From positions 31,248,001 to 31,312,000 of the forward strand of contig NC_043001.1 of assembly GCF_006345805.1 (NCBI RefSeq): a stretch of DNA of 64,000 nucleotides. Reading direction: 5' to 3'. Source of the stretch: Octopus sinensis. Its lineage: Eukaryota. Numbering within the stretch: position 1 is the stretch's first letter; every line of letters starts with the position of its first letter. The position numbers and the translations under genes are program-made. The notes under the pieces were generated by a model that had not been told where the DNA came from, did no database searches, and saw only the letters and a program-made list of their open reading frames with translations. This document shows, piece by piece, positions 663-62,750 of this stretch.

Positions 663-762
663 NNNNNNNNNNNNNNNNNNNNNNNNNNNNNNNNNNNNNN
701 NNNNNNNNNNNNNNNNNNNNNNNNNNNNNNNNNNNNNNNNNNNNNNNNNNNNNNNNNNNNNN
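663..762. other. Assembly gap (100 N)
   Basis: A run of exactly 100 N, as expected for a fixed-size scaffolding gap. Confidence 1.
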
Positions 763-18214: not shown

Positions 18215-18590
18215 CAACAATTGAGGGTAAAATTAATTAATTATTAATCAATTCACCAAGTGTTCAGTATGCAAAGGGACCATTTAAGGCGAATTCAATT
18301 ATTACATTATATAAAAGGGCTTAGTAAAATAAATTACTTTGCCGCATACTGAACTCATTAGAAATAGCAGCTAAAAACTTTTTTAAAACTATTTCTAATA
18401 CTAAAGAAAACCTCTCTCATAAAGTGTTTGCTCAACTCAACTCACGAAAGTTGAGTTGAGTTGAGCAAACACTTTATGAGAGAGGTTTTCTTTAAGTATT
18501 AGAAATAGTTTTAAAAAAGTTTTTTAGCTGCTATTTCTAATGAGTTCAGTATGCGGCAAAGTAATTTATTTTACTAAGCCCTTTTATATA

Positions 18591-18592
<2 letters not shown>
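18211..18592. mobile_element. Foldback (palindromic) element between (TA)n tracts, copy 1
   Basis: Arms 18306-18445 and 18450-18592 are near-perfect reverse complements around a GAAA loop (18446-18449). Confidence 0.85.
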
Positions 18593-18628
<36 letters not shown>

Positions 18629-19230
18629 CTGTGTGTGTGTGTGTGTGCTTGCATTTGTGTTGCGTTTGTTCCACCGTTTGACAACCGTGTTGGTCTGTTT
18701 AGGTTCTCGTCGCCTAGCAGTTCGACAAAATAAACCCGATAGGACTAAGTGCCAGACTTAAAAAGGAAATACATATTGAGATCTATTTGTTCGACTGGAC
18801 CCTTCAAGCAGGTGTCCTGAAAGAAGTAGAAGGTAAACGATTTCATTTGAGAAAACTTAATTGAAGAATTGTGTGAGTAACGATTACGTGTTAAGTTTTT
18901 GATAATGCAGATCGGTATTTTTAAATTTTATTTTATTTATATTTATCTATTGAAAAGGGTAAATTTAATTTCAGGCATATGGCCCATATATGCCATTGGT
19001 CGGAACGCAAAAGATGAGAATAGGCGTAGAAGTGGCTGTGTGGTAAGTAGCTTGCTTACCAACCACATGATGGTTCATTACCCCTGCGTAGCACCTCGGG
19101 CAAGTGTCTTCTACTGTAGCCTCGGGTCGACCAAAGCCATGTGAGTGGATTTGGTAGTCGGAAACAGAAAGAAGCCTGTCGTGTATATATATATATATAT
19201 AATATATATATATATAATATATATATATAT

Positions 19231-19612
19231 AATTTCAACAATGAGGGTAAAATTAATTAATTATTAATCAATTTCACCAAGTGTTCAGTATGCAAAGGGA
19301 CCATTTAAGGCGAATTCAATTATTACATTATATAAAAGGGCTTAGTAAAATAAATTACTTTGCCGCATACTGAACTCATTAGAAATAGCAGCTAAAAACT
19401 TTTTTAAAACTATTTCTAATACTTAAAGAAAACCTCTCTCATAAAGTGTTTGCTCAACTCAACTCACGAAAGTTGAGTTGAGTTGAGCAAACACTTTATG
19501 AGAGAGGTTTTCTTTAAGTATTAGAAATAGTTTTAAAAAAGTTTTTTAGCTGCTATTTCTAATGAGTTCAGTATGCGGCAAAGTAATTTATTTTACTAAG
19601 CCCTTTTATATA

Positions 19613-19614
<2 letters not shown>
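19231..19614. mobile_element. Foldback element, copy 2
   Basis: Palindrome 19327-19614 with loop at 19468-19471. Confidence 0.85.
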
Positions 19615-19650
<36 letters not shown>

Positions 19651-20045
19651 CTGTGTGTGTGTGTGTGTGCTTGCATTTGTGTTGCGTTTGTTCCACCGTT
19701 TGACAACCGGTGTTGGTCTGTTTAGGTTCTCGTCGCCTAGCAGTTCGACAAAATAAACCCGATAGGACTAAGTGCCAGACTTAAAAAGGAAATACATATT
19801 GAGATCTATTTGTTCGACTGGACCCTTCAAGCAGGTGTCCTGAAAGAAGTAGAAGGTAAACGATTTCCATTTGAGAAAACTTAATTGAAGAATTGTGTGA
19901 GTAACGATTACGTGTTAAGTTTTTGATAATGCAGATCGGTATTTTTAAATTTTATTTTATTTATATTTATCTATTGAAAAGGGTAAATTTAATTTCAGGC
20001 ATATGGCCCATATATGCCATTGGTCGGAACGCAAAAGATGAGAAT

Positions 20046-20460
20046 AGGCGTAGAAGTGGCTGTGTGGTAAGTAGCTTGCTTACCAACCACATGATGGTTC
20101 ATTACCCCTGCGTAGCACCTCGGGCAAGTGTCTTCTACTGTAGCCTCGGGTCGACCAAAGCCATGTGAGTGGATTTGGTAGTCGGAAACAGAAAGAAGCC
20201 TGTCGTGTATATATATATATATAATATATATATATATATATTATATATATATATATGTGTGTGTGTGTCTGTCCCCCCAACATCGCTTGGCAACCGATGC
20301 TGGTGTGTTTACATCCCCGTAACTTAGCGGTTCGGCAAAAGAGACCGATAGAATAAGTACTAGGCTTCCAAACAATAATTCCTGGGGTCGATTTCCTCGA
20401 CTAAAAGCGTTGCTCCAGCATGGCTGCAGTCAAATGACTGAAACAAATAAAAGAGTAATG
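20046..20460 (+). mobile_element. tRNA-derived SINE with internal microsatellite
   Basis: Head aggcgtagaagtggctgtgtggtaag and 3' end gcagtcaaatgactgaaacaaataaaaga. Confidence 0.85.
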
Positions 20461-39189: not shown

Positions 39190-39600
39190 ATTATCTTTTA
39201 CTTAAGTCATTAGATTGCGGCCATGCTGGGGCACCGCCCTGAAGAACTGTTAGTCGAATGGATCGACTTCGGTCCTTATTTATTTTTAAGCCTGGTACTT
39301 TATTCCATCGGTCTCTTTTTGAAACCGATAGAATATGTACCGGCCTCTTTTTGCTAAATTACGGGGACGTAAACACACCAACACCTGTTATCAAACGACG
39401 GTGAGGGAAAAACACAAAGACACACACACGTGTGTGTGTGTATATAATATATATATATATATACATTGACGGGCTTCTTTCAGTTTCTGTCTACTGACAA
39501 GGTTTTTTTCGGCTTGAGGCTATAGTAGAAGACACTTGTCCAGGGGGACACGCAGTGGAACTCAGCCTTCAGCCATGTTGTTGGGAAGTAAGCTTCTTAA
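39190..39600 (-). mobile_element. Older copy of the microsatellite-containing SINE
   Basis: Runs from agtcattagattgcggccatgctggggcaccgcc to gaggctatagtagaagacacttg. Confidence 0.75.
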
Positions 39601-41187: not shown

Positions 41188-41720
41188 TTATCATCATCAT
41201 CATTGTTCGACCGTGGTCGAGACAATGGAATTTACTATGCTACGCCAGACTTCACGGTCCATCATAGCATTAGGGAGGTCCTGTTGCTGGATGCCTGTAT
41301 CCCTGGAGATTACATGAGGGTAGGAGAGTGTGCGTCCTCTGGTATTGCGAGTAGATGGCTTCCAGAGGAGAAGAGGAGAAATTGTCTCGTTTTCAGCTCT
41401 ACAGCAATGTCCAGCAAATTGGTCTCTCCTACCTTTCACAAGAGATGATACAGGTGGTAGTTTTCCATATATTTGTATTTTGGTTGGATGACGCTTCCAC
41501 GAGAGATTTTGAGCTCTCATAAGGAGGCGAGTGTAAGTTCCATCCAACCGCCTCTCAAGCTTCTTTGATAAAGTCCCGGTTTCTGAGCCATATAGTAGAA
41601 TTATTTCGACTGTGGCTTTGAAGATTTTAACTTATAAGCTATAAGACCCAACTGAAACTCTAACGTATCTCACAAACTCGGCTCGCAGGGAACTTACCTC
41701 TACTTAACACTGTTGCGCAT
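41188..41720 (-). mobile_element. RTE-clade LINE 3' end with (TGA)n tail
   Basis: ORF 41200-41547 reads DGTYTRLLMRAQNLSWKRH...RRDQFAGHCCR...AMMDREVWRSIV, with a tgatgatgatga tail. Confidence 0.85.
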
Positions 41721-51046: not shown

Positions 51047-51379
51047 TACATACATGCATACATACATATGTACGTACGTGTGTCTTTCTTAAGCAGTTTA
51101 TATAACTGTCCTTATATTCCTCCCTCTCCAACTTCCATTTTCTTTCTCTCAATCCGACTATACAAACATTTCTGAACCTTTCAAAATATCTTGAGGCACG
51201 TTTAAGCGTGTGTGTGTATGTAAGCATTAATACATACATATGCGTGAGCGCTTATATGGGAGCGGTATTTTTGTCTTATAGTTTATAACCTAGTTAAGTA
51301 TCAGAGAGGAAATTAAACGGAATTACGAGCCACATCTTTTCATACGGTTTTCTTTAGTAATGATTAAATCTTCTATCTT

Positions 51380-51680
51380 TTATTCTTTGCTTGTTTTGCA
51401 GTCATTTGACTGCGGCCATGCTGGAGCACCGCCTTGAAGGGTTTTAGACGAACAAATCGACCACAGTACTTCTTTATATTTCTATATCATGGTACTTATT
51501 CTATTAGTCTCCTTTTGCCGAACCACTAAGTCACGGGAACGTAAACTCACCAACACCTGTTGACAAGCGGTAGTAGGGGACACAGATACATATACATACA
51601 CACACACACAGACACACACACACACATATATACGACGAGCTTCTTTCTGTTTCCATCAACCAAATCCACTCACAAGGGTT
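51380..51680 (-). mobile_element. Microsatellite-containing SINE, partial
   Basis: Runs from gcagtcatttgactgcggccatgctggagcaccgcc to caaatccactcacaagg. Confidence 0.8.
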
Positions 51681-57379: not shown

Positions 57380-58435
57380 TTAATAGAAGTAGGAGTAATG
57401 AATGGCCAAAATTTGGGGGAAGGGACGGTCATAAAACATTAGTATTTGAAGTCAGGTCAACACACATTCCCATATTCGCATAGCTCATAGGTTAGATATT
57501 CTCCAACTGTTGTACTGAAATTTGATATGGGCCATTTATACGGATGGTTAACCTATAATATCTGGTGATTGTTGCTATGAAGCACTTAGCTGCAAACATG
57601 AGTTGCGGCATCACTGGTGCCAAGCTGTATCGACCTTTGCCTTTCCCTTAGATAACATCAGTAGCGTGGAGAGGGGAAGCTGGTATGTGTGGGTGACAAC
57701 TGGTCTTCCATAAACAACCTTGCCCGGACTTGGGCCTTGGAGGGTAACTTTCTAGGTGCAATCTCATAGTCATTCATGACCGAAGGAGGTTTTTATATAG
57801 TGAGAGAGAAAGAGAGAGACGGAGAGAGAAAGAGTGACACAGCCAAAGGGACAGACAGACAGACAGACAGATGGAATAAATTGCTTTTAGAAATAATTTA
57901 TTTTCACGATCATCTTTCCTGTCAATCACCACCATAATTTTATTGAACGTACTTAATTTTATTGACCGTACAGTACATATAGTATACAGCATCACACTTG
58001 TTCAGAATCGTTAGAAAGAGATCCTCTGTTCGAAGTGAAGGCAATAAAACCAGAAGGTATCGTAGAGATTACGTTGGACTTGATGCTTAGATACAGGAGA
58101 AAAAAAAAGTCTACTACATTCCCAGAAAAGAAAAATTAAAATTTGCAACGTCTATAATAGGAAAACTATATGACAATAAGAAAAATTAGGTCAAATAGCG
58201 AGGCAACTACTCCCTTAACTGTCCAAGACTCCATGCATCAACAGGAACGGCATCTTGGTGTGTGGGATAACGATCAGACTAGATGTAATGTGTCGAGCCA
58301 ATAATCACAATTTTTATTCAAGTTAAAAGCTAAAAATTTATTCCTATCTCTTCCCTAATAATATTTCTCTTCAAATGATTGTTTTGTATGTGTACCGTAC
58401 TCATATATATATATATATATATACATACATACATA

Positions 58436-58662
58436 CGGGGTGGTCCAAAAGTAGGTTTACAGTTATTCAACTATCTCTTTCGCATTCATATATCAACAGT
58501 TTAGATCTTATAAAAAAAATGAAAATATTATTCTATGGTAAATTAATTTTGTCAAGCTTCTTTTCCAGTTTGTAAGATACAAATTTAAATGTAATAAAAT
58601 GTTTTTAAAAGAAATTTAAGGTACCTACGTGATAACTGTAAACCTACTTTTGGGCCGCCCTG
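58436..58662. mobile_element. Tc1/mariner MITE
   Basis: ~30-bp TIRs c(g/a)ggg(t/c)gg(t/c)ccaaaagtaggtttacagttat, flanked by TA. Confidence 0.85.
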
Positions 58663-58743
58663 TATGTATGTATTTATGTTTGTTTTATGTTTTCCAGTTT
58701 CAGCTCTTGAGCTGTGGCCATGCTGGGGCACCGCCATTTTGTT

Positions 58744-59042
58744 AAAAGATTGGTGTTCAGTTATATCGAACAGGCTGCCAGCCGACGACTATTCACAGGC
58801 GCGATCCCACTACTGCTCGACACGGAGTCTTTTGCCTGCTGCGTTTCCGCCCTGGGCCGAAGCGACCCTCCTTAGACAACCTGGTCCTGATGAGCTCCCT
58901 CTCCAGCACCATATTGATGCCGAGCTTAGCGCGGAGACCCGATCGCCATAGAAGACCGACTACCAGTACTCCCATCCTCAAACCGGTCAACCAACCAAGC
59001 CTCCGAGTAGCTGGATTACAGGAGCACGACACAACTCCCAGC
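58744..59042 (-). ncRNA. RN7SL: Full-length SRP (7SL) RNA copy (gene or retrocopy), 299 nt
   Basis: The minus strand aligns end to end with metazoan 7SL as I recall it. It includes gctggg...cctgtaatccagctactcggaggc (Alu domain), gcgatcgggtctccgcgctaagctcggcatcaatatggtg, helix 6 gag-GGAG-ctc, helix 8 cccagggcg-GAAA-cgcagcagg and cagtagtgggatcgcgcctgtgaatag, and ends in TTTT. Confidence 0.93.
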
Positions 59043-59049
59043 AAATATA

Positions 59050-59490
59050 TTCTTTTGTTTCAGGCATTTGACTACGACCATGCTGGAGCACCGCCTTTAG
59101 TCGAACAAATCGACCCCAGGATTTATTCTTTGTAAGCTTAATACTTATTTTATCTGTCTCTTTTGCCGAACCGATATATATATATATATATATATATATT
59201 TACGGCTGGCTTCTTTCAGTTTCCGTCTACCAAATCCATCCACAGGCCTTTGGTGGGCCCGAGGCTATAGTAGAAGACACTTGCCCAAAGTGCCACGCTG
59301 TGGGACTGAACTCGGAATCATGTGGTTGGGAAGCAAGGTACTTACCACACAGCCACTCCTATATATACATACGACAGGCTTCTTTCAGGTTCCGTCTACC
59401 AAATTCACTCACAAGGCTCAAGGTGCCACGTAGTGGGGATTGAACCCGGAACCATGTGGTTTGGAAGCAACCTCCTTACTACACAGCGTA
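59050..59490 (-). mobile_element. Microsatellite-containing SINE directly upstream of the 7SL copy
   Basis: Its 3' end gcatggtcgtagtcaaatgcctgaaacaaaagaatatatt abuts the 7SL 5' end. The head is partly duplicated. Confidence 0.8.
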
Positions 59491-61088: not shown

Positions 61089-61309
61089 TCAAACACGACG
61101 CATGAGCGCTATGATTTTACCGAACGACCTGCACAAATCGACGGTGTATGAACAAGCGCATGCGTCAGGTGTGGAAGTGATCGCAGAGCAACGAGAGATG
61201 AAATGTTCTCTCAATAACAAAACGCACCACCCGGTCTAGGAATTGAAATCACAATCTAGCGATCATGAGTACAACACCCTACACACTAAGCAGTGTGTAT
61301 ATCTATATA

Positions 61310-61845
61310 CAGGGTGTCCCCAAAAAATGTATACACTTGCTGCAACAGTCTGTCATGCCAAGCATTAGAGAGGACTTTGAACAGGAAGAGTTTTATTTCC
61401 AGCAAGATGGGGCACCTCCACACTACCATCGCGATGTTAGATCCTTTCTTGATGGGATCTTGCCAAGCAGGTGGATTGAACGGAGAGGTTTTGTCGAATA
61501 CCCTCTACGTTCACCAGACCTCACACCACTAGACTTCTTTTTATGGGGATACCTAAAGGACAAAGTCTACGCACAGAAACCTGCAACAGTCGTTCAATTG
61601 AGGGCAACCATTGAACATGAATGTACGAATATCCCAAGGGAATTGTTCCATGATGTGTGCCATTCCATCGCTTCGCGTTGTCAGCAGTGTCTGGAGCAGA
61701 ACGGACATCAGTTTGAGAACATGCGATAACGAGACAATAGAATGATATTTGTAAATTCTTTTACATGTTGAAAATTATTCGAATTATAATAAACCCTAAA
61801 TTTACAATTATTTAAGGTGTGTATACATTTTTTTGGGACACCCTG
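61310..61845 (+). mobile_element. Internally deleted Tc1/mariner transposon of the DD41D (rosa/Visitor) type
   Basis: 27-bp TIRs cagggtgtccc(c/a)aaaaaatgtatacac with one mismatch and a TA TSD. The open frame FYFQQDGAPPHY...RSPDLTPLDFFLWGYLKDKVY has 41 residues between the second and third catalytic D. Confidence 0.9.
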
Positions 61846-62260: not shown

Positions 62261-62425
62261 GGCGCAAGAGTGGCTGTGTGGTAAGTAGCTTGCTAACCAA
62301 CCACATGGTTCCGGGTTCAGTCCCACTGCGTGGCATCTTAGGCAAGTGTCTTCTGCTATAGCCCCGGGCCGACCAATGCCTTGTGAGTGGATTTGGTAGA
62401 CCGAAACTGAAAGAAGCCTGTCGTA

Positions 62426-62464
<39 letters not shown>

Positions 62465-62750
62465 CATGGCCACAGCTCGTGAGCTGAAACTAGAATCAAT
62501 CAATCAATCATATGTATGTGTGTTTGTTTGTGTGTCTGTGTTTGTCCCCCTAGCATTGCTTGACAACCGATGCTGGTGAGTTTATGTCTCCGTTACTTAG
62601 CGGTTCGGCAAAAGAGACCGATAGAATAAGTACTGGGCTTACAAAAATAATAAGTCCCGGGGTCGAGTTGCTCGACTAAAGGCGGTGCTCCAGCATGGCC
62701 GCAGTGAAATGACTGAAACAAGTAAAAGAGAAAGAGTAAAAAGAGTAAAA
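62261..62750 (+). mobile_element. Full-length microsatellite SINE with a nested short retroposon tail at ~62461-62510
   Basis: Head ggcgcaagagtggctgtgtgg. The inserted cagcatggccacagctcgtgagctgaaactag(aatc)n sits inside the (TA)n. The tail is (gtaaaaga)n. Confidence 0.88.

Follow-up and report, generated by a model that had tools for sequence, protein, structure and literature searches.

A complete SRP (7SL) RNA sequence lies tightly packed between retroposons in the Octopus sinensis genome, and the question raised by this locus is whether the sequence is a working SRP RNA gene, a copy made from RNA, or the head of a mobile family. In the prevailing view, a SINE arises when a reverse transcriptase that has begun on a LINE tail switches to a small Pol III RNA, and to our knowledge the intermediates of SINE birth have rarely been seen outside mammals. 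The whole stretch of DNA that was analyzed, 64 kb in length and called the window here, contains one assembly gap of 100 N at 663..762.

The 7SL sequence is complete from end to end. A cmscan search of the whole 64-kb window with Rfam matched Metazoa_SRP (RF00017) at 58745..59042 on the minus strand over model positions 1–299 of 299, with a score of 241.1 bits against a gathering score of 70 (E 4e-65). Base 58744, directly after the match, is the fourth T of CTTTT (58748..58744), and with it the feature measures 299 nt (58744..59042). The preliminary description of this DNA had already read a complete 299-nt 7SL ending in TTTT on the minus strand and had proposed an Infernal check against the Rfam model; the full-length match bears that reading out. 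A second SRP-like match was absent from the 64-kb window even in a permissive scan at E<=1, the remaining matches of which were sub-threshold, microsatellite-driven noise. Helix 8 (gcg-GAAA-cgc) and the loop of helix 6 (GGAG), both picked out in the preliminary description, are seen in the cmscan alignment and equal the Rfam consensus. The same alignment shows the conserved S-domain loops (helix 6 GNAR and helix 8 GGAA) and the UGUAAU motif of the Alu domain, which is present as CCUGUAAUCC.

Five 7SL genes from other invertebrate assemblies, recovered via spurious ORFs, served as comparators; they score 266–278 bits and are 77–79% identical to the window copy. Canonical consensus pairs number 96 of 120 in the window 7SL and 98–100 of 120 in the comparators, leaving 24 non-canonical pairs versus 20–22, and the window copy shows 12–13 compensatory double changes relative to the comparators. 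In structure, the window 7SL is essentially intact, nearly to the degree of the real genes. At the 68 highly conserved consensus positions, the window copy deviates five times and the comparators three to five times. Three deviations, G14U, G108C, and A183U, are private to the window copy relative to the comparators. G14U turns the loop L2 from UGGC, the form shared by every comparator and the Rfam consensus, into UGUC, and G108C breaks a pair. In the structure of the human Alu domain, loop L2 pairs with the other loop through G13 and G14. The CpG content of the 7SL is not depleted, with 20 observed and 22.7 expected. With one or two hits at conserved sites, the window copy shows about what a slightly aged, neutral copy of 2–4% divergence would carry, which is weak evidence for such a copy.

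A close relative of this 7SL is found in Octopus bimaculoides. A 7SL copy of that species was spuriously translated into the 60-aa UniRef entry A0A0L8HPT1 (P0020), which a homology search aligned with the sense ORF 58793..59044 of the window at 55 of 60 identical residues (92%). Mapping of the five differences showed that P0020 keeps the consensus G108, has U183 in common with the window copy, and carries two derived changes of its own. Octopus therefore has two or more 7SL copies or orthologues that differ slightly from each other. The antisense ORF that spans the junction between the 7SL and its downstream neighbor (58664..58951) has as homologues only 7SL ORFs of other animals, with 55–74% identity. 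Exact look-ups of this antisense ORF and of the sense ORF matched no record.

The downstream neighbor is the 3' end of a retroposon. An 8-nt linker, AACAAAAT (58736..58743, minus strand, read directly), separates the T4 of the 7SL from the two-hairpin module GGCGGTGCCCCAGCATGGCCACAGCTCAAGAGCTGAAAC (58735..58697, minus strand), which is called tail2 here; this immediate succession of 7SL, short linker, and retroposon tail agrees with the preliminary description. Hairpin 1 of tail2 reads GGC.GGUGC....GCAU.GCC and hairpin 2 reads CAGCU-CAAG-AGCUG, after which come AAAC and the A-rich terminal repeats TGGAAAACATAAAACAAAC (58678..58696, minus strand, read directly). Together with these repeats, the module comprises 58 nt (58735..58678). 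In related tails, GGCGG is preceded by CTAAA, CTAACAGTTCTTCAG or CTAAAACCCTTCAA; the linker could be part of the parent element of the tail, A-rich sequence added post-transcriptionally or without a template, or a piece of the original flank.

The identity of this tail had to be revised. The preliminary description took it for the 3' terminus used by the dominant SINE of the window, and this part of the description fails: identity to the dominant SINE tail (consensus GGCGGTGCTCCAGCATGGCCGCAGTCAAATGACTGAAACAAGTAAAAGAATAAAAGA) reaches only about 84%, and tail2 shows compensatory changes in a hairpin and has terminal repeats of its own (AAAACATA-type in tail2 versus AAAAGAAT-type in the dominant SINE). 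The window has 10 occurrences of the tail core GGCGGTGCYCCAGCATGGYC, with 0 expected. Tail2 is marked by diagnostic bases, i.e., C for T in the loop of hairpin 1 and A for G between the hairpins, and its hairpin 2 is built from CAGCU/AGCUG as opposed to CAGUC/GACUG in the dominant tail, with two pairs changed on both sides. The same two-hairpin structure is predicted for tail2 (−17.5 kcal/mol, z = −3.3) and for the consensus of the dominant tail (−18.1 kcal/mol, z = −4.1), and hairpin 2 is lost in decayed SINE tails such as that of the SINE directly upstream of the 7SL. The two compensatory pairs and the consensus-like fold thus argue that tail2 came from a working tail lineage and not from a decayed SINE copy. 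Tail2 belongs to a separate, structurally intact sister lineage of the dominant SINE tail, and its parent may be a LINE and not a SINE.

A second, independent copy of the tail2 lineage, recognized by the shared diagnostic bases, lies on the plus strand at 62463..62510 (CAGCATGGCCACAGCTCGTGAGCTGAAACTAGAATCAATCAATCAATCA, 48 nt; 82% identity to tail2 over 51 nt). This copy is 5'-truncated inside hairpin 1, reads CAGCATGGCCACAGCTCGTGAGCTGAAACTAGAA followed by (TCAA)n, and is embedded in the internal (TA)n of the full SINE copy at 62268..62729. Its form suggests that the tail2 lineage often aborts early and favors TA repeats, and its shortness shows that reverse transcription was broken off early, which is the point where templates are switched.

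Other tails and LINE remnants are present in the window. Two older SINE relatives on the minus strand (39193..39600 and 51373..51570) have an extra 9–11 nt (CAGTTCTTCAG and AACCCTTCAA, respectively) before the GGCGG hairpin, and the copy at 39.2 kb has the GGCGGTGCCCC variant in common with tail2; on these grounds several tail subfamilies coexist. The C-terminal end of an RTE-like LINE ORF (...FAGHCCRAENE...) lies at ~41195..41547 on the minus strand, and a Pfam match was absent for this fragment. We rejected this RTE-type LINE fragment as the partner of the tail; it ends in (ATG)n and is without the hairpin module. Pfam scans of four ORFs of the window gave no match, and a literature search with the tail sequence found no paper.

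Upstream, the 7SL meets the tail of another retroposon. This element, SINE1 (59054..59372, minus strand, found by BLAST to other copies), is a tRNA-type copy of the dominant family with a head, (TA)n, and a 3' part with the tail, and is without its first 5 nt and about 60 nt of its middle. As the preliminary description stated, the 5' end of the 7SL abuts the tail of this separate SINE: the tail of SINE1 reads ...CTGAAACAAAAGAATATATTT up to G1 of the 7SL, with ATATATTT between the tail and +1 of the 7SL. The distance from the end of SINE1 to 7SL position 1 is 6–11 nt, the spacer reaching 59043. A T4 is absent between the SINE1 head and the terminator of the 7SL. SINE1 differs by about 8% from the local SINE consensus and looks older than the 7SL, though subfamily differences blur this comparison. 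It begins in or beside the GTATGTATATAT with which a still older, internally deleted SINE head ends (SINE-A, 59385..59487, minus strand, about 68% identity to full copies). The window was also scanned for tRNAs, and none was called, the SINE heads being too diverged to be called tRNA. A 7SL inserted into one SINE tail, with the flanking tails as duplicates, is rejected in agreement with the preliminary description: the two flanking tails differ at ~9 of 42 positions, with compensatory changes and other terminal repeats.

On the far side of tail2, a 257-bp MITE follows directly (58421..58677), bounded by 46-nt terminal inverted repeats whose arms (58421–58466 and 58632–58677) are 91% complementary, and whose core CCAAAAGTAGGTTTACAGTTAT occurs only at these two sites of the window. 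A (TA)n, read directly at 58399..58420, stands after the MITE on the minus strand. Unique DNA is therefore absent on both sides of the 7SL, with SINE1 upstream and tail2 downstream. The window holds two further features. A Tc1/mariner-type transposase fragment at 61265..61729 (plus strand, 154-aa ORF) is 86–89% identical in protein to entries from the orb-weavers Nephila pilipes, Trichonephila clavata, and Argiope bruennichi, a cephalopod entry being absent among the best matches, and this transposon may possibly have been transferred horizontally. A tandem duplication of ~1.02 kb that includes a SINE head spans about 18400..19200 and 19430..20210, with stretches of 100% identity at an offset of 1024, and twin sub-threshold mir-87-like matches lie at 18408..18487 and 19430..19509.

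The surroundings of the 7SL were compared with those of the comparator genes. Upstream DNA is unique and AT-rich in all five comparators, three of which have TTTATAAAC at about −38..−30. In the window, the 3' part of a SINE takes up positions −1 to −100, which upholds the earlier statement that a unique upstream promoter region is missing; hairpin 2 of SINE1 stands at −30, AATATATTT occupies −9..−1, and a TATA-like element near −30 is absent from this region. At the other end, all five comparators have at least seven T within the first 14 nt, versus exactly T4 and then AAC in the window. T4 can still terminate Pol III, and the missing extended T-run is only suggestive evidence against a functional SRP gene. 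When homology begins at +1, closes with a minimal T-tract, and has foreign retroposon sequence immediately outside it, this is the signature of a copy made from RNA. Taken against the comparators, the start at +1, the minimal T4, and the foreign flanks thus point to an RNA-derived copy. Among the comparators, two 7SL genes of one invertebrate assembly (L001 and L004, ENA sample ERZ25069870) are 99% identical and have a common upstream block of >100 nt with TTTATAAAC near −35, the picture given by real multi-copy 7SL genes.

These comparisons bear directly on the view that the sequence is a genuine ancestral SRP RNA gene beside which SINE1 upstream and a 5'-truncated tail2 element downstream were inserted later and independently. 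We regard this as unlikely. The full length (241 bits), the intact helices with the protein-binding loops of helices 6 and 8, and the undepleted CpG are what such a gene would show, short tail2 fragments do insert on their own, and insertions are piled up in this region. However, the promoter region would have been displaced and be without a TATA at −30, the terminator is only T4, and the conserved G14 and G108 carry private changes. Moreover, two insertions in the same orientation would have landed 6–11 nt and 8 nt from the transcript ends. A same-strand SINE end at most 11 nt upstream combined with an element start at most 8 nt downstream is expected by chance at ~1e-6, a figure that assumes about 11 tails and some 20 starts of elements across the window and that clustering in TA-rich hot spots would raise.

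Template switching accounts for the arrangement at better than even probability in our judgment: 7SL-tail2 would be a one-off chimeric retropseudogene formed in target-primed reverse transcription, of the U6/L1 type. Its 5' part comprises an entire small RNA, from +1 through the 3' end of that RNA, and its 3' part is a 5'-truncated retroposon end in the same orientation. A LINE reverse transcriptase would have started on an RNA with the tail2 3' module, i.e., on the LINE itself or a dependent SINE, with the two-hairpin element and the terminal repeats acting as its recognition module; the partner would be an autonomous LINE whose 3' end carries GGCGGTGCCCCAGCATGGCCACAGCTC..GAGCTGAAACTRGAA. After about 58–66 nt of the tail RNA had been copied, early abortion would have let the reverse transcriptase jump to the 3' end of the abundant SRP (7SL) RNA and copy it to its 5' end. 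The product, 5'-7SL-(AACAAAAT)-tail2-3' (59042..58678), would then have been integrated in a TA/A-rich site at the end of or beside an older SINE. We infer the template switch itself, the order of the insertions, and that this copy does not serve as the working SRP gene. The preliminary description had offered a one-off template-switch chimera or a 7SL-headed SINE family mobilized through the dominant tail; its chimera is favored by the 7SL running from +1 to T4, the 5'-truncated module in the same orientation, and the lack of unique flanks and of a TATA at −30, and the tail of the dominant SINE is the part that has to be given up.

The role of SINE1 in this event may be read in two ways. It may have been gained by a second jump, as a third part of one cDNA, or be an independent insertion into the same hot spot. 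SINE1 ends in TTT right before +1 of the 7SL, and the block is bordered by TA-microsatellite on both sides if the MITE is discounted. Flank repeats around a bipartite or tripartite unit, sought by eye, gave only TA/A-rich low-complexity matches, the MITE standing at the 3' end; the SINEs of the window have short or no target-site duplications. The adjacency is explained equally well if the insertion was nested in the A/TA-rich end of a SINE that was already there.

Small-RNA chimeras of this kind are known from other hosts. Small-RNA/LINE chimeras, including 7SL-L1, have recently been catalogued in mammals (bioRxiv 10.1101/2025.02.02.635956), and tripartite SINE-U6-L1 and WEIRD-MgSINE-MGL chimeras are documented (PMC2104539). 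Like mammalian U6/L1, the rarer 7SL-L1 (bioRxiv 10.1101/2025.02.02.635956), and the WEIRD-MGL 'MINE' of Magnaporthe (PMC2104539), the octopus sequence has a full-length Pol III RNA with its own T-tract at the 5' side. As in the U6/L1 type, this RNA is joined head-to-tail with a 5'-truncated retroposon 3' end in the same orientation, and a template switch accounts for the join. Unlike U6/L1, the 3' partner is a hairpin-type ('stringent') tail with short repeats in place of the poly(A) end of L1, a cephalopod is the host, the flanks hold only TA/A-rich matches, and the retroposon part of ~58 nt is essentially the bare recognition module. The order of SINE, small RNA, and retroposon 3' end, in one orientation and with junctions at the RNA ends, recalls mouse B2 SINE-U6-L1 and Magnaporthe WEIRD-MgSINE-MGL (PMC2104539). 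Those tripartite units are enclosed by direct repeats of 14–16 bp, whereas only TA-rich sequence is found on both sides here, and SINE1 (~8% from the consensus) looks older than the 7SL (~3–4% or less from P0020).

The locus can also be set beside 7SL-derived families and genes. The head is 7SL-derived as in the SINE1 families (Alu, B1, and hagfish SINE1-1_EBu), the hagfish family being a chimera of 7SL with an older SINE that has a non-L1 partner (PMC7245038). Unlike these families, the octopus element is present in one copy in 64 kb and retains the S domain and the terminator. The retrocopy families P7SL_MD and P7SL_Cpo also keep a full-length 7SL, but they carry poly(A) in place of the hairpin tail. 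With metazoan SRP RNA genes (RF00017), the sequence shares the full-length match, helices 2–8, UGUAAU, and the GGAG and GGAA loops; it departs from them in the missing unique upstream region, the minimal terminator, U14, and the broken pair at 108. Judged by title and abstract, none of the papers that our literature search returned describes 7SL-derived elements in cephalopods.

It is improbable, in our view, that the sequence is a member or founder of a SINE family with a 7SL head that propagates in octopods, mobilized by a partner LINE that recognizes the hairpins. The 7SL head would then supply an internal Pol III promoter, and read-through of the weak T4 would add tail2 to the transcript. 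A small-RNA head with a minimal, intact LINE-type recognition tail is the architecture of a SINE, hagfish SINE1-1_EBu was born from such a chimera (PMC7245038), and another, slightly different 7SL copy exists in O. bimaculoides (P0020). However, a single 7SL stands in 64 kb against 10 or more ordinary SINE tails, the S domain is undeleted, unlike in Alu, B1, and hagfish SINE1, and T4 (58748..58744) lies between head and tail as the first T4 downstream of the SINE1 head. Both the intact terminator and the retained S domain speak against an efficient SINE. Copies of the junction were absent from protein-ORF collections, which carries little weight as these collections hardly contain octopus DNA. 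Metagenome scans with an octopus-specific 24-mer of the 7SL and with the SINE tail core each gave 0 hits, a negative that carries no weight in a collection devoid of octopus DNA.

Two separate events, in which a plain 7SL copy (a retrocopy or a DNA-level duplicate) and an unrelated 5'-truncated tail2 reached the same TA/A-rich hot spot, are unlikely: TA-microsatellite does stand on both borders (GTATGTATATAT before SINE1 and (TA)10 after the MITE), the other tail2 fragment also lies in (TA)n, and a TA-targeting MITE landed here too, but that the two should lie within 8 nt and in one orientation is still improbable, and a tail-less 7SL RNA is without a recognition module for a hairpin-dependent reverse transcriptase, so a tail or a switch is needed for it to be copied at all.

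For genome annotation, the Rfam SRP match at this locus should not be taken as a working SRP RNA gene unchecked. The chimera reading would leave a complete 7SL joined to little more than a bare two-hairpin, non-L1-type module in a SINE-dominated cephalopod genome. Even as a single dead copy, it would indicate that the retroposition machinery of octopus captures 7SL RNA by template switching. Should further copies with this junction exist elsewhere, octopus would have an invertebrate equivalent of Alu/B1 and hagfish SINE1. And if the sequence does belong to a SINE family, it would represent a third independent origin of the SINE1 class and the first outside vertebrates, at a stage before the loss of the S domain and the terminator.
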